IMG/VR virus record: IMGVR_UViG_3300020473_000011
Span: 1 to 64,000 of that record
DNA length: 64,000 bases
Direction: 5' to 3' (one strand)
Shown: positions 3,186 through 62,570 of the stretch, one piece after another
How positions within the stretch are numbered: position 1 is the stretch's first letter
Layout of the letters: each line of letters begins with the position of its first letter
The notes under the pieces: generated by a model
Told to the model about the DNA's origin: nothing
Seen by the model: the letters and a program-made list of their open reading frames with translations, nothing else
Database searches by the model: none
Program-made: the position numbers and the translations under genes

Positions 3186-3748
3186 CTTGGGAGACGCTTC
3201 GTATGACTAAACTAAATGACGTGATAGAGCTAGAAAAGTTGCGCTGTAGCCGATTTTCTATCATAGGTATTTCGCACCTTGGCATTGAAGATAGCTACAG
3301 GCCATCAGAAACCTTGAAGGCTTTTCTAAGGACTGGGCGTGCGAATGTTGCTGCTGTTTTAGGAAAGGAAGACATTCGATTAGATAAAAAGCTCATAGCA
3401 CAGCTAGACGAGCCGAAAGGTTTAGACCTTATGACCTTTAGTAGCTGCCTTGATGACATACGCTGGAAAAGAAGGGGGATCGTACTGCACTTTACGATAC
3501 CGACGTGTACACCCGAAGGCCAAGGAATGATAACTGACCATTCTAAGCCACTCTTTGCCTTTGCGTATGGCGACGACTATGAGACTGCCCTGTATAAAGC
3601 GAAGGGCGTATCGGATGAGGTTGTAGCAGCACAGCTGGCATACCGCCGCGCATTTTTTGTTGATAAATCAAACGTGGTTATGGCTCATGGGGAAGGCCGT
3701 TCTATTCTTAGCAAAATGAAACAGTATTTAACAGGGTCGCGCGTTTAG
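3170..3748 (+). CDS. Hypothetical protein (start probably ATG near 3203)
   Basis: ORF follows the upstream gene; GGAG before the internal ATG. Confidence 0.6.
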   Translation: MDFRITWETLRMTKLNDVIELEKLRCSRFSIIGISHLGIEDSYRPSETLKAFLRTGRANVAAVLGKEDIRLDKKLIAQLDEPKGLDLMTFSSCLDDIRWKRRGIVLHFTIPTCTPEGQGMITDHSKPLFAFAYGDDYETALYKAKGVSDEVVAAQLAYRRAFFVDKSNVVMAHGEGRSILSKMKQYLTGSRV

Positions 3749-3782
3749 CACTCAACTCTGTTTAATCATTAACCACTTGGTG

Positions 3783-3809
3783 CGTTGTACAAATAAAGTT
3801 TGTACAACG
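3783..3809. promoter_or_regulatory. Double TTGTACAA operator as an inverted repeat upstream of HU
   Basis: CGTTGTACAAA-TAAAG-TTTGTACAACG; a third site at 3898-3905. Confidence 0.6.
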
Positions 3810-3949
3810 TATTTAAAAACCCTTGTCAATGGTGCAGTTTTCTGAGAAAGTACGGCTCAAATAGGTTGTTGCCTATTCGAGACGTACGACCAAAGGGTTG
3901 TACAATGAGAATTGAGACTAATGATTAGGGCATTGCCCGAGGATTTCAA

Positions 3950-4228
3950 ATGAATAAAGCTGAATTGATCGCTGCTGTTGCAGACCGTACTGAAACTACT
4001 AAAGCTTCTGCCGAAGCAGCTGTAAACGCTGTATTTGGTGTTATCACTGATGAACTAGCTACAGGTAGCGGTGAAGTTAAAGTAGCAGGTTTCGGTAACT
4101 TCTCTAAAAAGCACAAAGCTGCACGCACTGGCCGTAACCCTCAAACGGGTGAAGCTGTTGAAATCGCAGCGCGTAATGCAGCTGGTTTCTCTGCTGCAAA
4201 AGGTCTTAAAGATTCAATCAACAGCTAA
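3950..4228 (+). CDS. hup: HU family DNA-binding protein
   Basis: MNKAELI...GFGNF...ARTGRNPQTGEAVEI...LKD signature. Confidence 0.97.
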   Translation: MNKAELIAAVADRTETTKASAEAAVNAVFGVITDELATGSGEVKVAGFGNFSKKHKAARTGRNPQTGEAVEIAARNAAGFSAAKGLKDSINS

Positions 4229-4546: not shown

Positions 4547-6018
4547 TGAGTAATAAAAACTACCTACACACGCTAGCTCAACGCATGTCTGAGCTAGCCG
4601 AAAGCCGACAACGGTGGGAAGCCCTTTACGGGATGGAAAATCAGGCAACTGCACTGATTGGGCTAATCGAAGAGCAAAACGGCTGGTTTGACTTCACTAA
4701 CATGTCTGTTGTGAAGCAACAACAAATACCTGATGGCACAGAGGTCATCATGTATGTAGACTCAATGAACACGTGGATGAGTGGCATCGTACGCGGATTT
4801 GTTACGACTGATAACGAAAGCTACGAGACGCACTACATTGTACAAGAAGAAGCTGTCCTAGCTTATGAAGCTGTCACCCCTACCCTGATTGCACCGCGCA
4901 AGATTGAAGACTACGTGGCAGGCTTAGAGGCTATCCTATCTGTAGAAATGCCAGACGTTACTGATTACATTTTCTGGAAGTTACCGCTTGAGTGCCGCTT
5001 AGGTAAAGTTAGTAAAGTTAAACTGGATGAATCTAACGATGTGGCGCGAGTAGACATATACAATGGTGTCACGACTGATACATTCCTTTACAACGTGGCA
5101 GGTGAACCCCTGTTCGTCAGCGACGAGCATCTTAGAGACGAAGGTCTGTATCTGCGCAATACCAAAGAGGCCATGGCTGAGGCTAGGTCACAGATATTTA
5201 AAGCCTTCTATGCACCTAATAGCCAGATAGCCTCGACTGATAAGTTTTCCAGAGTACGCGCTATGCTTTTAGCGATAGAGCGTCGGTCGCCGCCAGAGGG
5301 TGCTCTTGGGCTAAGCCCACAGCAAGTACAGACGGCATTGAGCTATCGAGACCGAAATCCTACGGCTGTTACGGCAATCCCTGATGAAAAAGCGTTAGGC
5401 TTTGTCATTCAAAGCTTTGGCTATTCCAATGCTTACACTAAGCTACGTCACCATAGGTCTCGGTTCCCTTGCGCTTTCGTTGCAAAGGATTCTGAAAGTT
5501 ATATGGTTGTCGATGCGATACCTGTCGGTAACTTTGAAGCCATTGCGTATGAATCACTTATTAATTATTTAGACCGTTGCCTTGCGAAGGCCACCCCCGA
5601 ACAAATTAGCCAAGCTGGCGAAGGCTATACTGAAAACGCTAAAGATGCTGCGTTAGTTACGGCCGTAATGGGGCTGCCTTTGTGCTGCGATGCAGGCGTG
5701 GTCGACCAACTCTTGGAGGTCGACCAAGGGGTCTATCGTTTGCAGCTGTCGAACAAGTCTACAACACTTGTCAACGCACCACTTGTCATTCATTACAACA
5801 GTGAGGGCTTGCCTTTAAACCCAGTACTGGCGAAGCTCACTGAGTTCCACCTTCGAAACCAAACCATGAACCGTGAACAAGTGGCGGTCTTTATTGAAAA
5901 TAAGCTACATCGCATGAGCGCAACCGTCGACAAGACAGCGCGCGATATTGTTACTGCACTCGAAAAAGCAGGCTTATTAAAATTCGATGATAATGGCGAG
6001 GTGGTACATGGCGGCTAA
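4543..6018 (+). CDS. Hypothetical protein
   Basis: 491-aa ORF in an operon. Confidence 0.75.
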   Translation: MMSNKNYLHTLAQRMSELAESRQRWEALYGMENQATALIGLIEEQNGWFDFTNMSVVKQQQIPDGTEVIMYVDSMNTWMSGIVRGFVTTDNESYETHYIVQEEAVLAYEAVTPTLIAPRKIEDYVAGLEAILSVEMPDVTDYIFWKLPLECRLGKVSKVKLDESNDVARVDIYNGVTTDTFLYNVAGEPLFVSDEHLRDEGLYLRNTKEAMAEARSQIFKAFYAPNSQIASTDKFSRVRAMLLAIERRSPPEGALGLSPQQVQTALSYRDRNPTAVTAIPDEKALGFVIQSFGYSNAYTKLRHHRSRFPCAFVAKDSESYMVVDAIPVGNFEAIAYESLINYLDRCLAKATPEQISQAGEGYTENAKDAALVTAVMGLPLCCDAGVVDQLLEVDQGVYRLQLSNKSTTLVNAPLVIHYNSEGLPLNPVLAKLTEFHLRNQTMNREQVAVFIENKLHRMSATVDKTARDIVTALEKAGLLKFDDNGEVVHGG

Positions 6019-6511
6019 TCTTTTTAAGCCACCTGCACAAACGCCAACAACAGGAAACCCGTCAGTCTTTTTGGCGGGTACCATCGACAATGGCAATAGT
6101 GCTGATTGGCAATCTGAACTTGTGGAGGCGCTAAGGTTATATGACGTCGACTTGTACAACCCGAGGCGTGAAGAATGGGACGCCAGTTGGGAGCAGTCTA
6201 TTCACAATCAAAATTTTAAGGAGCAAGTAACATGGGAACTCGACCACCTAGATAAGTGCGATATTATCTTCATGCACTTTGTTGGTGGAAGCCAATCACC
6301 GATCACGTTACTTGAGCTAGGTCTTTATGCCGAAAAGCGCCCTAAGAACTTGATGGTCGTATGTAGCCCTGATTTCTGGCGTAAGGGTAACGTTGAAGTC
6401 ATTGCGGAGCGCTATGGCATACCGTTGTACTACGATTTCACAAAAGCGACCCGAGCACTCAGGTCTAGGCTCTCGCCGTTGATACATAGTGCGAAAACCA
6501 CTGCACCCTAG
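6008..6511 (+). CDS. Nucleoside 2-deoxyribosyltransferase-like protein
   Basis: VFLAGTID..WQ, NPRR, QVTWELDHL and SPITLLELGL motifs; ATG 6008 preferred over track start 5987. Confidence 0.85.
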   Translation: MAANLFKPPAQTPTTGNPSVFLAGTIDNGNSADWQSELVEALRLYDVDLYNPRREEWDASWEQSIHNQNFKEQVTWELDHLDKCDIIFMHFVGGSQSPITLLELGLYAEKRPKNLMVVCSPDFWRKGNVEVIAERYGIPLYYDFTKATRALRSRLSPLIHSAKTTAP

Positions 6512-6552
6512 TGTCTTTTGACTTTACAAAGTAGCTGGACAAAGCCTATTAT

Positions 6553-8454
6553 GTGGTTATAACTAACTGTGTAATAGGCTTTTTAGTGTCTGACGCTGTC
6601 AACAAATTAGTAGAGTCCCTGTCGCATGCAACCACACAGCATGAACGCAATCTAAGCGTACTGCTCAACATGGTAAGGCATGAACGTATTTTTACAGATA
6701 ACGCACTGGCAAACCTGCTTAACTACGCAGGCACCTCAACGCTAAAAGAACACCAGCAAAAGCTTCGGAAGTACATGAAGAGGTTCGACTACTCAGATAG
6801 TTCGGTTGCCTCGTATTCAAGCCGTCTTAAAAAGCTCGTTGCGTACTATCAAGACCATTGCCTATCTGATGAATTACCGACCCAACTAAGCATTGGGGAA
6901 AAGCTTGGGCATCTTGCACGTAAAGAACTTGGCCACTGCTCTCAGAAAGCGCAGCTAGAACACCTGCATAGCCTTAGTGGCATTCCACTGCCGTCGTTAA
7001 AGCGGTGGCTTACTAAAGGTACGAAACCAACCAAGGCACATCAAGACGCACTGTTTAAGCTGGCTGACCATTTCGATGTCTCACGTAACTACTTAACGAT
7101 AGACCCCGTTGCTATGGCCTCACCAGCTACTACCCGTATCGCAAAAGATTCAGTCAAGGCACTGCCCAAGGTTATTTGGGGTGGTCACTTACAGGGTCAG
7201 CTCGACAAGCTCTTGCTTTTCAAGACTAAGGCGCGAACACCCGCGTTATCACTGGCGTCCTTTAAACTGAATCGACGCGAGGCTCAAACACTCGTAGGTG
7301 GTGCTCGTTGGACAACGAATGCCGATGGTAGTAATGCTTCGGGTCAAAACTTTGAACGGATGCTTGACCGCTATTTTCGCTGGTTGTGCTCTAATTATGG
7401 TCTTGAGGCGGAGCAGCTTGACCTCAGTATGTTGCTGGTGGCCGAGTACCTAGAAGCTTATGTGGATGATTGCCTCGATGGTGAGTTCTACGCCACCTTG
7501 CAGACAACATTAAACTTACTTTCAGGCTTAATTGATCCGTTCCAAGGCTACCTTTGCCGCTACCACGCACCATTAACGGGTTATCCTCTCGGAGACGGGC
7601 AAGAGTCCGAGTACTTCGACCAACTAAGTATATGGCAAGAGCACGCCAGTTATATTAATAGCCAAGTTAAGACATGGTTACGTGATGTTCGCCACTTAAT
7701 GGCCGAGCAGCAACATGACAGTGACGACGCAGGTAAGCGGAATATTGGTTGGCTTCTTGATAGCTTAGATAGCACACTAGACCAAAGTGTTGCCGACGTT
7801 CGTCAACTGTCCGCTGATTTAAGCCAGCATAGCAAGCGCCTGACAGGTATTAATCGTCTTGCGCCAGCCCAAGTCAGCCTTTGGCTTCTTATGAGCTTAG
7901 AAGCGCCCCTGCGTGTCTCTAACTGGTGCGCCTTAAAGTTCTCCGACAAAGACCGTAGCAAAGAGCCAATTCTCTTCCGTGATAGTGGGCGTTGGCGTCT
8001 ACGTGTGCCCCGCAGTTACCTCAAGAACAGGCGTGGTCGTGAAGTTGAGGCAATCGATCAGGTTCTTAGTAACCCTCTGATCGGCGAGCTTATCGAACAG
8101 GTTCTCAATTACCGCAAAGAGCATAAAATAGAGACGGATGCAGTCTTTGTACAGACGCGATCAAGTAAGCATCGTAGCGCAGGCGAAGCCTACCAAAGAA
8201 CAGCATTGGCAAAATCAATACAAACTTGGACGGGACGAGCCGCATTCACGCGCTGGCCTGACCGCGACGTGGGGCGTGGCATCAACCCTCATGGTATGCG
8301 ACATTTTGTAGCGAGTTACGTTCTAGATAAGACAGGTGATTATAGACTCGCGGCTACGAGCCTAATGGATAGCGTGGCTGTGGTCATGAATGTCTATGGT
8401 AAAAATGACCACAGCCTAAATCAGAAGAAGCTCGCGGAGCTTCATCGGGTGTAG
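6553..8454 (+). CDS. Large tyrosine recombinase/integrase-like protein with an internal HTH
   Basis: PLRVSNW (R), HGMRH (HxxR), terminal Tyr in VMNVYGK; internal SGIPLPSLKRW HTH-like segment. Confidence 0.8.
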   Translation: MVITNCVIGFLVSDAVNKLVESLSHATTQHERNLSVLLNMVRHERIFTDNALANLLNYAGTSTLKEHQQKLRKYMKRFDYSDSSVASYSSRLKKLVAYYQDHCLSDELPTQLSIGEKLGHLARKELGHCSQKAQLEHLHSLSGIPLPSLKRWLTKGTKPTKAHQDALFKLADHFDVSRNYLTIDPVAMASPATTRIAKDSVKALPKVIWGGHLQGQLDKLLLFKTKARTPALSLASFKLNRREAQTLVGGARWTTNADGSNASGQNFERMLDRYFRWLCSNYGLEAEQLDLSMLLVAEYLEAYVDDCLDGEFYATLQTTLNLLSGLIDPFQGYLCRYHAPLTGYPLGDGQESEYFDQLSIWQEHASYINSQVKTWLRDVRHLMAEQQHDSDDAGKRNIGWLLDSLDSTLDQSVADVRQLSADLSQHSKRLTGINRLAPAQVSLWLLMSLEAPLRVSNWCALKFSDKDRSKEPILFRDSGRWRLRVPRSYLKNRRGREVEAIDQVLSNPLIGELIEQVLNYRKEHKIETDAVFVQTRSSKHRSAGEAYQRTALAKSIQTWTGRAAFTRWPDRDVGRGINPHGMRHFVASYVLDKTGDYRLAATSLMDSVAVVMNVYGKNDHSLNQKKLAELHRV

Positions 8455-32988: not shown

Positions 32989-33049
32989 GCTGCACTGCAA
33001 CCACTTATAGAAAATAATCGTTGTACAACGATATTGTTATTGCTATACT
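32989..33049 (+). promoter_or_regulatory. Regulon promoter module
   Basis: CTGCACTGCAA box, perfect ATCGTTGTACAACGAT, TTGTAC-17-TATACT. Confidence 0.75.
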
Positions 33050-36755: not shown

Positions 36756-36935
36756 TTAGCACGAGCTGCTACAAGAGCTTGAGCTGCATGAACTACATGA
36801 GCTGCATGAACTGCACGAGCTACAGCTGCCACCGCCACCACCTGAGCCGCCGCGACGCTTACGTTTGTTTGACATGTTTAGAGCTGCTTTGTAGGTAAAG
36901 CGCTTGTGCCTTGTACATTTACTTAATTGACGCAT
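36756..36935 (-). CDS. 59-aa Gly/Ser/Cys-rich precursor-like peptide 2
   Basis: MRQLSKCTRHKRFTYKAALNMSNKRKRRGGSGGGGGSCSSCSSCSSCSSCSSSSCSSSC; GGGGAG SD. Confidence 0.8.
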   Translation of the reverse strand: MRQLSKCTRHKRFTYKAALNMSNKRKRRGGSGGGGGSCSSCSSCSSCSSCSSSSCSSSC

Positions 36936-36954
36936 AGTATGACTCCCCTTTTTC

Positions 36955-37098
36955 TTAACACGAACTACTGCAAGAGCTACAAGAACTACAGCTACTGCCA
37001 CCACCGCCACTTGAGCCACCACGGCGTCGGCGTGACATATTTAGCGTACCCTTGTAGGCACTTCGATGGTTTTTAAGGTGTGTCTTTAAAGTCTTCAT
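36955..37098 (-). CDS. 47-aa Gly/Ser/Cys-rich precursor-like peptide 1 (not in ORF track)
   Basis: MKTLKTHLKNHRSAYKGTLNMSRRRRGGSSGGGGSSCSSCSSCSSSC; GAGGG SD; paralog of peptide 2. Confidence 0.8.
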   Translation of the reverse strand: MKTLKTHLKNHRSAYKGTLNMSRRRRGGSSGGGGSSCSSCSSCSSSC

Positions 37099-37763: not shown

Positions 37764-38288
37764 ATGAATTATCGAGTAAATACGGATTCTGCGCGCCCTC
37801 AGCCCTTTCCACCCCATGGTAGGATTTCTGTAGAGGTTCACGGTACCAATAATGACCTAATCCATGTCAAATGCTTCGGCGCTTTCAATAAAGAAACAAT
37901 GCTAGCCTTAGTCGACATACAACAGCGCTATCGTGATTTATTGTGCCCCAAACGCTACGTGATCGTAGAGTTCATAGACACATGTTTAGCGCTGCCTGAG
38001 TTTTTTGCTGAGGCCACACGTCATCATAAAGAATTGGTTTCCCGTGGCCAGTCCTCAAAGGCCGTTGCTTATGTTATGCGCAAAGGTATCGAGGGTAAGT
38101 CCATGATGAAAGGCTTTTACTTGGGGGTCTATAAAGACGCTGGGATCCCAGTAGTCGTTACTGAGACCGTAGACGAAGCCCGCCAGTGGCTTAAAGAAAA
38201 AGGGCTGGGATCAGCCCAAACTAATGAGAATTGGAGCACACTCGCGGAATCGAACCGCGCTCATGCTGCTTTGCAGGCAGCCACCTAA
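37764..38288 (+). CDS. STAS/SEC14-like hypothetical protein
   Basis: Small alpha/beta pattern ending TVDEARQWL; 3' end overlaps tRNA-Cys antisense. Confidence 0.55.
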   Translation: MNYRVNTDSARPQPFPPHGRISVEVHGTNNDLIHVKCFGAFNKETMLALVDIQQRYRDLLCPKRYVIVEFIDTCLALPEFFAEATRHHKELVSRGQSSKAVAYVMRKGIEGKSMMKGFYLGVYKDAGIPVVVTETVDEARQWLKEKGLGSAQTNENWSTLAESNRAHAALQAAT

Positions 38289-38306
38289 CCACTCAGACAA
38301 GTGTGC
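38232..38306 (-). tRNA. tRNA-Cys(GCA)
   Basis: GCACACT/AGTGTGC acceptor, GCTGC-CT GCA AA-GCAGC anticodon arm, U73, encoded CCA. Confidence 0.95.
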
Positions 38307-38325
38307 GTTGTACAATGAATTAAGT

Positions 38326-38401
38326 TGGCAGGGGCTATAGGACTTGAACCTACAACCTTCGGAGTTGGAAACCGCTGCTCTCCCAATTGAGCTAAGCCCC
38401 T
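38326..38401 (-). tRNA. tRNA-Trp(CCA)
   Basis: AGGGGCT/AGCCCCT acceptor, G73, CCA; anticodon arm GCGGT-TT CCA AC-TCCGA. Confidence 0.93.
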
Positions 38402-38412
38402 GCAATGAAAAG

Positions 38413-38496
38413 TGGTACGGGTAGCGAGGATCGAACTCGCAAGGACATACCGACAGAATTTAAACCTGCTGCGTTTACCAGTTTCGCCATACCCGT
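38413..38496 (-). tRNA. tRNA-Leu(TAA)
   Basis: ACGGGTA/TACCCGT acceptor, A73, long variable region, GCAGG-TT TAA AT-TCTGT. Confidence 0.92.
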
Positions 38497-38502
38497 ATTG
38501 TT

Positions 38503-38590
38503 TGGTGGATAGCCTTGGACTCGAACCAAGAAGCCCTTTAAGGGAGCGGGGTTACAGCCCGCGACGCTACCAATTACGCTCTAACTATCC
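38503..38590 (-). tRNA. tRNA-Tyr(GTA) copy 2
   Basis: GGATAGT/GCTATCC acceptor, GCGGG-CT GTA AC-CCCGC, long variable arm, CCA. Confidence 0.92.
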
Positions 38591-38599
38591 AATAATGTT

Positions 38600-38677
38600 T
38601 GGTGGACACTGGCCAGATTCGAACTGCCGACACTCGGAACTTCAACCCGATGCTCTAACCAACTGAGCTAAGTGTCC
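38600..38677 (-). tRNA. tRNA-Phe(GAA)
   Basis: GGACACT/AGTGTCC acceptor, TCGGG-TT GAA GT-TCCGA, CCA; one extra G in the T-stem. Confidence 0.9.
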
Positions 38678-38687
38678 ACACTAAAAG

Positions 38688-38776
38688 TGGTGGATGAGGT
38701 AAGACTCGAACTTACAAAACCCTAAAGGGCAACGGGGTTACAGCCCGCGACGCTACCAATTACGTGTTACTCATCC
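38688..38776 (-). tRNA. tRNA-Tyr(GTA) copy 1
   Basis: GGATGAG/CTCATCC acceptor, GCGGG-CT GTA AC-CCCGT, long variable arm, CCA. Confidence 0.92.
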
Positions 38777-38790
38777 AAAAAATCTTTGTA

Positions 38791-39009
38791 CTACTCTACG
38801 TTGAGGCGTTCACCGTTCGGTAGTACAAGGGATAGCTCCACATGCCCACCAAGTGCCTCGACGTAAGCTGCCAGTTTAGTCACAGACAACTGTTTAATTT
38901 CCTTGCCTTCAAGTTTGCTGACACTTGAATCGCTAACCCGCATTTGAGCGGCAATGACCTCTTGCTTTACTTTTAGCTCTTTTCTGAGGTCTTTTAGATT
39001 AGGTTGCAT
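38791..39009 (-). CDS. XRE-family HTH protein (HigA-antitoxin-like)
   Basis: LKDLRKEL..KQEVIA..M.VSDSSVSKLE...LAAYVEALGGHVEL. Confidence 0.85.
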   Translation of the reverse strand: MQPNLKDLRKELKVKQEVIAAQMRVSDSSVSKLEGKEIKQLSVTKLAAYVEALGGHVELSLVLPNGERLNVE

Positions 39010-39038
39010 TTTGGTGTTCCTACTATGCGTAGGGCATT

Positions 39039-39073
39039 AAAAAAGCCCAGTGATAAATCAGCTGGGCTTTTTT
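39039..39073 (-). terminator. Attenuator terminator upstream of the HTH-tRNA operon
   Basis: AAAAAAGCCCAG-CTGATTTATCA-CTGGGCTTTTTT on the minus strand. Confidence 0.9.
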
Positions 39074-39141
39074 GACTAACGTCACATGGTCTGTTCCGAC
39101 CTGCCCAGAAGCTACCGCCCCCGAGCCTAGTTTCTCGGGGA
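39039..39141 (-). promoter_or_regulatory. Transcription attenuator with alternative hairpins
   Basis: CCCCGAG/CUCGGGG versus GCUCGGGGGC/GCUUCUGGGC versus CUGGGC/GCCCAG versus terminator. Confidence 0.8.
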
Positions 39142-39142
39142 A

Positions 39143-39187
39143 CTATCTAAATAAATAACACCAAAAATATAACGCTACGTTAGCCAT
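39143..39187 (-). CDS. Leader peptide MANVALYFWCYLFR (not in ORF track)
   Basis: ATG GCT AAC GTA GCG TTA TAT TTT TGG TGT TAT TTA TTT AGA TAG; TAAGG SD upstream. Confidence 0.88.
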   Translation of the reverse strand: MANVALYFWCYLFR

Positions 39188-39243
39188 GTCTTTCAACCTT
39201 AAAAAAAGTAAATTCGTGTAGCTCTCAATGAGCTGATATGACA

Positions 39244-39272
39244 ACTATAGCGTGACCCCTGAAAATTGCCAA
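39244..39272 (-). promoter_or_regulatory. Sigma70 promoter for the leader-HTH-tRNA operon
   Basis: TTGGCA-17 bp-TATAGT on the minus strand. Confidence 0.75.
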
Positions 39273-39282
39273 ACACTTTAGC

Positions 39283-39307
39283 TTTCCAAAATAGAAAGTT
39301 TTGGAAA
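39283..39307. promoter_or_regulatory. Inverted repeat, candidate operator between divergent promoters
   Basis: TTTCCAAAA-TAGAAAG-TTTTGGAAA. Confidence 0.5.
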
Positions 39308-39553
39308 TTAAGAACTTGACGCGGGTTTGTCGCGACGTGTAATATGCTGCGTAACACGGGGGATTCCCTTGAAACCCATGTGTGCCCAAGGGCTTTTATA
39401 AGTCCTCGCTGCTAGCAGGTACCCACACAGCGGTACTGCCAAACTATGACGCTTTAATGTGACTAGACCAAATTCTTAAAACCCTGTATTTAACGCGGGT
39501 GACTTTTGGAACGCTAGCGAAGTCTATATCCGCGTGAAGATATAGAGGTTTCG

Positions 39554-39979
39554 ATGTCGAATAGACAGGCTTCAACAAGTGTATTTTTAGAAGAGAATGT
39601 ATTACAAACAATAGTAGATGAGCGTCTTAACGCAAAACCCGAATTAGTTACAGCTTACAACTGCTTAGTAACTCTTCATCGTGATGTACACCGTATTGGG
39701 GACATTGTACAACCAGTGTCGCCACAACACAGTAGCATTATAGAAGAAGGGAACGCTGGGCTTGAACAAGCCGTCGACTTTTTCATTGAGGGCATCATAA
39801 CTAGAGACTTTCTCGATATTGTACAATTGACGTACGACAGTAATCGCTTGCACGAAACATACAATCACGTAGAACGAATTTTAATCAGTACGCTCGACGC
39901 GCGCTGTGTTGATGTGCAGGAGTTTAAACAAACACATGGAAAAGCATCCACTAAAAGTGCTATTCGATGTCATGGGTGA
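39554..39979 (+). CDS. Hypothetical protein
   Basis: 141-aa ORF with GAGG SD. Confidence 0.6.
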   Translation: MSNRQASTSVFLEENVLQTIVDERLNAKPELVTAYNCLVTLHRDVHRIGDIVQPVSPQHSSIIEEGNAGLEQAVDFFIEGIITRDFLDIVQLTYDSNRLHETYNHVERILISTLDARCVDVQEFKQTHGKASTKSAIRCHG

Positions 39980-62392: not shown

Positions 62393-62510
62393 GAGGCTGT
62401 TCCCTTTAGTTGGTATTGTCTGTAAAAGGCTGCGGGGCAACCGACTTGGCACAAATTTATAGAATCGTTGTACAACCGTCAAGTTTTATTTATGTTTTAA
62501 ATGAAAGTAG

Positions 62511-62570
62511 CTGCGCCGCAACGCTTTTCATTCAAAAAGTGTTGTACAACGATGTGAGTGATGCTATAGT
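62511..62570 (+). promoter_or_regulatory. Regulon promoter module
   Basis: CTGCGCCGCAA box, GTGTTGTACAACGAT, TTGTAC-17-TATAGT. Confidence 0.75.

Follow-up and report, generated by a model that had tools for sequence, protein, structure and literature searches.

The first 64 kb of a 281,557-b IMG/VR virus record (IMGVR_UViG_3300020473_000011; CheckV completeness 67%; GC, 47.7%), referred to here as the window, carry a short leader open reading frame (ORF) and an intrinsic terminator placed ahead of a small XRE regulator gene and an array of six tRNA genes. Because proteins 100% identical to the XRE protein of this locus are encoded on contigs from marine metagenomes, Tara Oceans among them, that reach 419.6 kb, the source element is taken to be an uncultured marine jumbo phage of ~419 kb. 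Most proteins encoded nearby lack a Pfam or PHROG match. A first-pass annotation of the window had listed a promoter, a Shine-Dalgarno (SD) sequence, a 14-codon ORF, hairpins, a terminator, the XRE gene and six tRNAs at this locus, and all of them were present on the minus strand. In the direction of transcription, a sigma-70-type promoter (TTGGCA-17-TATAGT; 39244-39272) that matches the consensus at 10 of 12 positions is followed by a stem-loop predicted from the fold at the inferred transcript start (AGCUC-loop-GAGCU; 39220-39234), a conserved SD (AAGG; 39197-39200) lying 9 nucleotides (nt) upstream of the ATG, and the leader ORF MANVALYFWCYLFR (39143-39187; 14 codons and a stop codon). The terminator (39039-39073; -17.7 kcal/mol) has the form AAAAAAGCCCAG-loop-CUGGGCUUUUUU, with arms at 39073-39062 and 39050-39039, and runs into a U6 tract; owing to its loop of more than 8 nt, it escaped a simple scan for terminators. 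Beyond it lie xre (38791-39009), which encodes a 72-amino-acid helix-turn-helix (HTH) protein (Pfam HTH_37/HTH_3, phrog_2339), and the genes for tRNA-Tyr(GUA) copy 1 (38688-38776), tRNA-Phe(GAA) (38600-38677), tRNA-Tyr(GUA) copy 2 (38503-38590), tRNA-Leu(UAA) (38413-38496), tRNA-Trp(CCA) (38326-38401) and tRNA-Cys(GCA) (38232-38306). A second intrinsic terminator closes the operon (38202-38217).

The leader ORF reads ATG GCT AAC GTA GCG TTA TAT TTT TGG TGT TAT TTA TTT AGA TAG, and its codons 6-13 (39149-39172; UUA UAU UUU UGG UGU UAU UUA UUU) are all decoded by tRNAs of the array downstream, amounting to 8 of 13 codons in one consecutive run; codons 2-5 and 14 are the non-cognate ones. Every tRNA species of the array is matched in turn by a leader codon, which bears out the claim of the first-pass annotation that no array tRNA lacks one. 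In length, this eight-codon cognate run surpasses every other in the six reading frames of the record (281,557 b). Moreover, codons for all five tRNA species of the array fall together in only 4 of 563,086 five-codon windows, and three of those four lie in the leader.

The XRE protein led to three further phage clades in other marine metagenomes, with 89, 82 and 81% protein identity and 78-84% DNA identity over the locus. All three retain the SD, the helices described below, the terminator, and the start, frame and stop of the ORF, which stays intact alongside a 1-nt indel between SD and ATG; both promoter hexamers are kept in the four phage clades, and the spacer has diverged. In these relatives the leader peptide is MTNV[A/T]FYFWCYLFR and the array consists of Tyr, Phe, Tyr, Trp and Cys, tRNA-Leu(UAA) being confined to the window's clade. 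Codon 6 is UUU in the relatives without tRNA-Leu(UAA) and UUA in the window, and on the unrooted tree the codon change and the tRNA difference map to the same branch. Other searches returned little: IMG/VR yielded two distant loci for the XRE protein, both without tRNAs, four chance matches for a degenerate leader-codon pattern, all without tRNAs, and no match for an attenuator pattern, and the plasmid and phage collections gave only generic tRNA matches when searched for close DNA relatives.

Folding of the whole leader gave -69.1 kcal/mol (z = -4.1 against dinucleotide shuffles) and delineated segments with competing partners. Segment A (39172-39186), which spans codons 1-6, forms the 5′ half of a long-range helix, A:A′, of 14 bp with 39087-39073; the 3′ half, segment A′ (AUGUGACGUUAGUCA; 39073-39087), abuts the terminator. 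Segment 1 (UCCCCGAG; 39134-39141) starts 1 nt past the UAG, where a ribosome at the stop codon masks it, and its partner is segment 2 (GCUCGGGGGC; 39117-39126). Segment 2 can pair either with segment 1 or with the 5′ part of segment 3 (GCUUCUGGGC; 39103-39112), and the CUGGGC of segment 3 pairs with the 5′ arm of the terminator to give an antiterminator. The 1:2 and 2:3 helices are nearly iso-energetic (-14.1 versus -14.7 kcal/mol). The switch was then evaluated in silico by folding the nascent RNA with the ribosome footprint masked. Masking with the A site at codons 1-12 yielded the 1:2 helix together with pairing of segment 3 to the 5′ terminator arm, that is, the antiterminator, and masking with the A site at codons 13-15 yielded the 2:3 helix and A:A′, leaving the 5′ arm free for the terminator. 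In full-length RNA folded without a ribosome, the control-codon region paired with segment 1, and the 2:3 helix, A:A′ and the terminator all formed as well.

Searching with a profile of the XRE proteins extended the family to bacteria through a 72-amino-acid homologue, P0005 (E = 5.7e-16), in an Alteromonas metagenome-assembled genome (MAG), and whole-genome searches of the order and family supplied further loci. The shared cassette comprises a palindromic operator, a sigma-70 promoter, a leader ORF, three competing helices, a terminator and a small XRE gene, and is found in Alteromonas and other Alteromonadaceae; a pattern scan of genomes gave 14 matches, 13 in Alteromonas records and one in an unclassified MAG. 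For 14 of 16 family members, ribosome-mask folding gave the same switch between a stalled ribosome and one at the stop codon. The sequence of the 1:2 helix differs in every clade and that of the 2:3 helix changes in step with it, which constitutes covariation; the same holds for helix A:A′, present in 13 of the 16 members in at least six unrelated sequence versions. The early leader codons are thus under constraint from base pairing in the RNA, and the later ones from the identity of the tRNAs. Furthermore, a three-way change converts segment 3, the 5′ arm and the 3′ arm from CUGGGC/GCCCAG/CUGGGC to CCGGGC/GCCCGG/CCGGGC in three loci (L126, L127, L128), and segment 3 reads CCGGGC or UCGGGC wherever the terminator stem is GCCCGG/CCGGGC. 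The terminator is conserved among relatives with variation in its loop and bulge, and the 5′ stem-loop keeps its stem while its loop varies among clades. Rfam 15 detected no non-tRNA family at the window locus at E values up to 1, save for a chance-level match inside the tRNA-Cys gene, and none in five family loci at E values up to 0.1. A further element, (A/G)UGCCC, stands directly after the terminator U-tract (39032-39037 in the window) and is conserved family-wide; it may pair with the GGGCA of segment 3 or of the 3′ terminator arm in read-through RNA and may thereby affect xre translation.

The first-pass annotation had pointed to tRNA arrays whose upstream mini-ORF codons co-vary with their anticodons as a place to look, and over ten cassettes the leader codons did follow tRNA identity. 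The leaders MTFTSIHHCHFAD, from the Alteromonas MAG with P0005, and MNNISIHHHFTL precede tRNA-His only, HHH being present in the leaders ahead of tRNA-His, and MMNCFRFTHFFSGS, with four Phe codons, precedes tRNA-Phe only. Another group precedes Ser/Pro-type arrays: MFNFVSLLSLAPTPSFSLPT stands before Ser(GCU) and Pro(UGG), MINASPISQQSSISPI before Ser, Ile, Gln and Pro, and MNYVSPSSIQIQISPI before Ser(GCU), Ile, Gln, Ser(UGA) and Pro, this last leader containing the stretch SPSSIQIQISPI and 12 consecutive cognate codons. The leader MKNMTLISVPSSISPN is followed by three Ser genes, Pro and Ile, with neither a tRNA-Gln gene nor a Gln codon; indeed, Gln codons appear in the leader only where tRNA-Gln is present. 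The leader MNFSRIYFWYHILT precedes Tyr, a Trp-like element and a tRNA(CAU). Over the ten cassettes, 64 leader codons were cognate to the cargo, compared with a mean of 25.9 with shuffled cargos, and none of 300,000 shuffles reached 64; the lineages in this test are not fully independent. When each lineage was reduced to one representative, the observed pairing was the unique maximum among 120 permutations. Within clades, too, single gains or losses of a tRNA (Leu; Gln; Ile) are accompanied by the presence or absence of matching codons.

Given this evidence, we read the locus, with a probability of roughly 0.8, as a transcription attenuator of the his type, operated by a ribosome, that controls expression of a small XRE regulator together with six accessory tRNA genes. 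Host RNA polymerase would start at the sigma-70 promoter, and a ribosome would translate the 14-codon leader. Prompt decoding of the Leu(UUA), Tyr, Phe, Trp and Cys codons would carry the ribosome to the UAG, where it would cover segment 1; segments 2 and 3 would then pair, A:A′ would close, the terminator would form, and transcription would end before xre. A stall at any of codons 6 to ~12 would instead allow segments 1 and 2 to pair and free segment 3 for the 5′ arm of the terminator, so that polymerase would continue through xre and the tRNA genes. As the operon's own tRNAs decode the control codons, its output would relieve the stall, giving negative feedback on those tRNA species in which a shortage of any one suffices, as in an OR gate. 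The XRE protein would probably bind the palindrome at about -53 and thereby set promoter activity. Leader translation and stall-dependent read-through in vivo are what the conserved arrangement of these elements leads us to expect, some natural event presumably lowering the tRNA supply. Backup tRNAs might be made only when a host tRNA is destroyed. The attenuator itself cannot distinguish tRNA loss from amino-acid starvation. The attenuation of tRNA genes through matched codons that was proposed at the outset is therefore retained as the best reading, given the conserved, co-varying mini-ORF, terminator and helices together with the codon-cargo match. Its emphasis on UNN-decoding tRNAs and MiaA did not carry over: this theme is peculiar to the present array, sister leaders using His, Phe, or Ser/Pro/Ile/Gln codons, and the phage tRNA-Phe is not a MiaA substrate because it has G37 in its anticodon loop.

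A number of observations, set out in this and the following paragraph, weigh against the attenuator reading. Within the leader, codon 14 (AGA) has no matching tRNA in any phage clade, the window's included, and codon 12 of the relatives, UUA or CUA, likewise has none. The nascent window RNA folded without a ribosome was predicted to adopt the antiterminator form, minimum-free-energy folding showed no switch in L061 and L067, and the locus carrying His and Phe tRNAs (L042) has no recognisable leader peptide, only unrelated sequence and a plain terminator. The core chromosomal copy of Alteromonas (L047-L066, L087-L123) has a conserved leader rich in Tyr, Phe and Asn (MQNVSTGYFYNFNY, MQTVTAQYNYNFTY and variants) followed by XRE alone and then a convergent gene, with no tRNA downstream; tRNAs are therefore not obligatory cargo of the cassette. 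A pattern scan of metagenomes recovered chiefly this tRNA-less copy, along with a few chance matches. The cassette could accordingly be a sensor of amino-acid or translation stress aimed at XRE, with the tRNAs as co-transcribed passengers and no feedback on their supply, an alternative that we consider unlikely. It draws on the fact that XRE is the sole gene present in every cassette, with more than 25 core Alteromonas loci that combine leader and XRE without a tRNA, and stalling reports charged tRNA, so that starvation would also act as a trigger, as is established for the his and trp attenuators. Passengers, however, should not match the leader, whereas the observed match is the permutation maximum, was equalled in none of the shuffles and tracks individual tRNA gains and losses inside clades, those of Leu among the phages and those of Gln and Ile in the Ser/Pro group; in addition, the candidate operator is found only at the cassette's own promoter, with no XRE regulon visible. 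XRE is the conserved core cargo and probably regulates its own expression. The initial view of the tRNAs as the controlled genes thus stands in part: the codon match upholds it, and the constancy of XRE and the occurrence of the cassette in bacteria as well as phage amend it.

Expression data raise a different objection. In one marine sample, metatranscriptome contigs cover 38397-39083, comprising XRE and four tRNAs, at a depth of 62-164 compared with 40-49 in the flanks, and none of 39084-39630, in which the leader lies; the contigs start at 39083 and 39073, in A′ at the base of the terminator. The operon is thus expressed, and its abundant RNA begins at the terminator base. These starts fit processing within A′, an unrecognised transcription start, or an assembly interrupted by a strain variant. 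The contig breaks do coincide with such a variant, a run of five or six A residues (A5 or A6), and the coverage gap is weak evidence because the contigs are de Bruijn assemblies that break at this variant. A phage-type motif, TTGTACAACG (38306-38315), also lies just upstream of tRNA-Cys, at a place where the relatives lack it, and could drive tRNA-Cys independently. Both findings would suit a terminator that serves as an insulator or as an RNA-stabilising 5′ hairpin, the RNA of xre and the tRNAs arising from an internal start or from constitutive read-through and processing, and the mini-ORF having no regulatory role. Consistent with this alternative, no leader ORFs were found at the record's second tRNA set (198756-202768, outside the window), whose eight tRNAs (Ser-UGA, Leu-UAG, Ser-GCU, Glu, Thr, Met, Ala and Asp) stand behind TTGTACAACG-type motifs; among the phage's tRNA arrays, attenuator control appears to be limited to the Tyr-Phe-Tyr-Leu-Trp-Cys array. 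We nonetheless regard the insulator explanation as very unlikely. A search of the minus strand from 39244 to 39010 turned up no sigma-70-like site, the start, frame and stop of the ORF are kept at 78-84% locus identity, and an insulator would need neither three co-varying competing helices nor the three-way change in antiterminator and terminator.

The identity of the regulator opens a third possibility. Distant homologues of the XRE protein are HigA-like antitoxins that follow Gp49/HigB-like toxin genes (L064, L069-L086), and the toxin gene of such operons occupies the position held here by the leader. The 14-residue peptide, which is hydrophobic and aromatic, might then be active in itself, either as a toxin or membrane peptide that replaces a HigB-like toxin or as an arrest peptide, with its codons incidental. 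This seems to us barely credible, since the family leaders (MTFTSIHHCHFAD, MMNCFRFTHFFSGS, MNYVSPSSIQIQISPI and others) share nothing beyond the sequence imposed by A:A′, and what is conserved is the match between codons and tRNAs. Like higBA-type toxin-antitoxin (TA) operons, the cassette combines a HigA-homologous XRE protein with a palindrome at its own promoter; those operons carry a toxin gene, and the cassette has a leader ORF and an attenuator in its place, so that the locus, which has the HTH protein and a leader ORF at the toxin-gene position, is not classed as a HigA-type TA system. The palindrome is an inverted repeat, CTTTC-N7-GAAAG (39282-39298), centred at about -53 from the inferred start, and is the candidate XRE operator. 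Its family consensus is (G/C)TTTCC-N5-GGAAA(C/G), and it is conserved ahead of the -35 element both among the phage clades and among bacterial cassettes that have otherwise diverged in their flanks. The phage record (281 kb) holds only this copy, Alteromonas genome G001 has one exact copy, at the cassette, and genome G002 has a second exact copy, apparently inside a coding region; with no convincing second site in the three, no wider XRE regulon acting through this motif is visible. Its position at the cassette's own promoter suggests, by analogy with TA operons, autoregulation, and the XRE protein may well regulate itself through the palindrome.

Several features of the tRNAs themselves deserve mention. 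The anticodon loops are unusual, with UUGAAGU (G37) in Phe and C38 in Tyr (CUGUAAC) and Trp (UUCCAAC), and none of the array tRNAs exceeds 76% identity to Alteromonas tRNAs. The divergence of cassette tRNAs from housekeeping tRNAs is compatible with a role as alternative tRNAs and does not prove it. Codon-usage compensation was considered for the array and rejected, as the phage uses UAU, UUU, UUA, UGG and UGU no more than Alteromonas does. The second tRNA-Tyr copy scored 28.5 bits in Rfam, against a gathering score of 29; its D and anticodon arms are identical to those of copy 1, relatives carry a different tRNA-Tyr at this place, and copy 2 looks as if it had been partly converted by copy 1. 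In the cassettes L067, L068 and L126, a conserved 72-nt Trp-like (CCA) element with a tiny D-loop lies between xre and tRNA-CAU, and L127 has odd Tyr-like and Trp-like genes after xre. ARAGORN called none of these elements in the four loci, the Rfam scan also missed the L068 copy, and the leaders of all four contain UGG and UAU. The tRNA(CAU) of L067, L068 and L126 may be a lysidine-modified Ile2 tRNA matching the AUA codons of the leader; it has no match in E. coli, and phage records label it tRNA-Met. One strain (L038) carries a second, partial copy of the xre 3′ end (3720-3990) between xre and tRNA-His.

The TTGTACAACG motif upstream of tRNA-Cys is one of many such sites. Over the whole phage record, the palindromic motif (A)TC(A/G)TTGTACAACGAT, with the core TGTACAAC, occurs in 149 copies against ~9 expected. 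The copies are mostly intergenic (in the window, for example, 3791-3801, 33022-33027, 38306-38315 and 62469-62548); some are followed by TATA(C/A)T 7 nt later and others by CTGC-N-GCAG ~25 nt later, and the other tRNA clusters of the phage also have the motif ahead of them. The motif is a candidate for a promoter or regulator site specific to the phage. Downstream of the array, a 174-amino-acid ORF on the plus strand (37764-38288) overlaps the 3′ end of tRNA-Cys and is limited to the window's clade; just 144-166 nt lie between tRNA-Cys and a PF27765-like gene in the relatives. In one strain (L023), otherwise near-identical, an IS605-type element (TnpB/OrfB and a Y1 transposase; 5878-7583) is inserted within this PF27765-like gene. 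Two tandem small ORFs of 88 and 47 amino acids at 36756-37098 on the minus strand have tails rich in Gly, Ser and Cys (GGSGGGG-SCSSCSSCSS...) reminiscent of precursors of microcin B17 or of linear azole-containing peptides (LAP), and Pfam gave a weak sub-threshold match to a YxzE-like bacteriocin family. The neighbouring 407- and 167-amino-acid proteins had no matches in IMG/VR.

Leader-peptide attenuators of the his, trp, phe, thr, leu and ilv operons are well known from enterobacteria. The cassette shares with the his type a sigma-70 promoter, a short leader, presumably translated in the cassette, that bears a run of control codons, mutually exclusive helices, an intrinsic terminator and a stop codon at which a terminating ribosome would favour terminator formation; without translation, the six-segment his model is mirrored by the pairing of the control-codon region with segment 1, the 2:3 helix and the terminator. 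His-type attenuators regulate biosynthetic enzymes, whereas the cassette governs tRNA genes and a DNA-binding protein, mixes control codons for up to five or six tRNA species and adds a long-range helix between the first leader codons and the terminator base. With xre and tRNAs downstream and no match to an Rfam leader model, the locus falls outside the classical amino-acid attenuators. At pheST, the pheM leader attenuates the synthetase that charges the very tRNA whose codons lie in the leader; there, as here, a component of the translation apparatus is under attenuation, but the product is the synthetase, not the tRNA itself. T-box riboswitches bind uncharged tRNA directly, work without a leader peptide and act on synthetase or amino-acid genes. 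They resemble the cassette in sensing the state of a specific tRNA and in choosing between antiterminator and terminator, and no T-box was matched in the Rfam scan of the window locus. The mechanism itself is thus classical leader-peptide attenuation; what is new is that tRNA genes and XRE are the products and that the control codons, of several species, are tailored to the cargo. Full-text literature searches, covering only a minority of subscription journals, brought up no earlier account of tRNA genes under leader-peptide attenuation.

Phage tRNAs are usually viewed as constitutive aids to codon usage or as counter-defence spares. In the latter capacity, T5 tRNAs act against retron-Eco7/PtuAB and PARIS, with variants in the anticodon loop playing a part. 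The array resembles such counter-defence tRNAs in being a spare set that diverges from the host's and has unusual anticodon loops, and no report of demand-sensing control over them was found in the literature. Evasion of a retron-type defence by phage tRNAs has been described (PMC11555353). The cassette links the ~419-kb uncultured marine jumbo phage to Alteromonas-type hosts, and it has probably been exchanged between such hosts and phage. Tentatively, and with more doubt than confidence, we can picture a modular, horizontally moving 'tRNA-on-demand' device derived from a higBA-like operon in which a codon-matched leader took the place of the toxin gene. Bacteria and a jumbo phage might use it to switch on divergent, possibly nuclease-resistant replacement tRNAs only when anticodon nucleases, tRNase toxins or infection have depleted the matching housekeeping tRNAs, and the leader might be rewritten with each change of cargo.

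Bacterial tRNA genes are usually seen as controlled at their promoters by growth rate and guanosine tetraphosphate (ppGpp). If the attenuator reading is true, it would offer a compact part for synthetic circuits that report a shortage of a chosen tRNA. It would also provide a handle on how attenuator leaders evolve with their cargo, the gains and losses of Leu, Gln and Ile being visible within the family, and on when accessory and phage tRNAs are needed. For the phage and its bacterial counterparts, it would amount to a direct, isoacceptor-specific feedback on tRNA supply, in which the speed of decoding is sensed and the missing tRNA is supplied.

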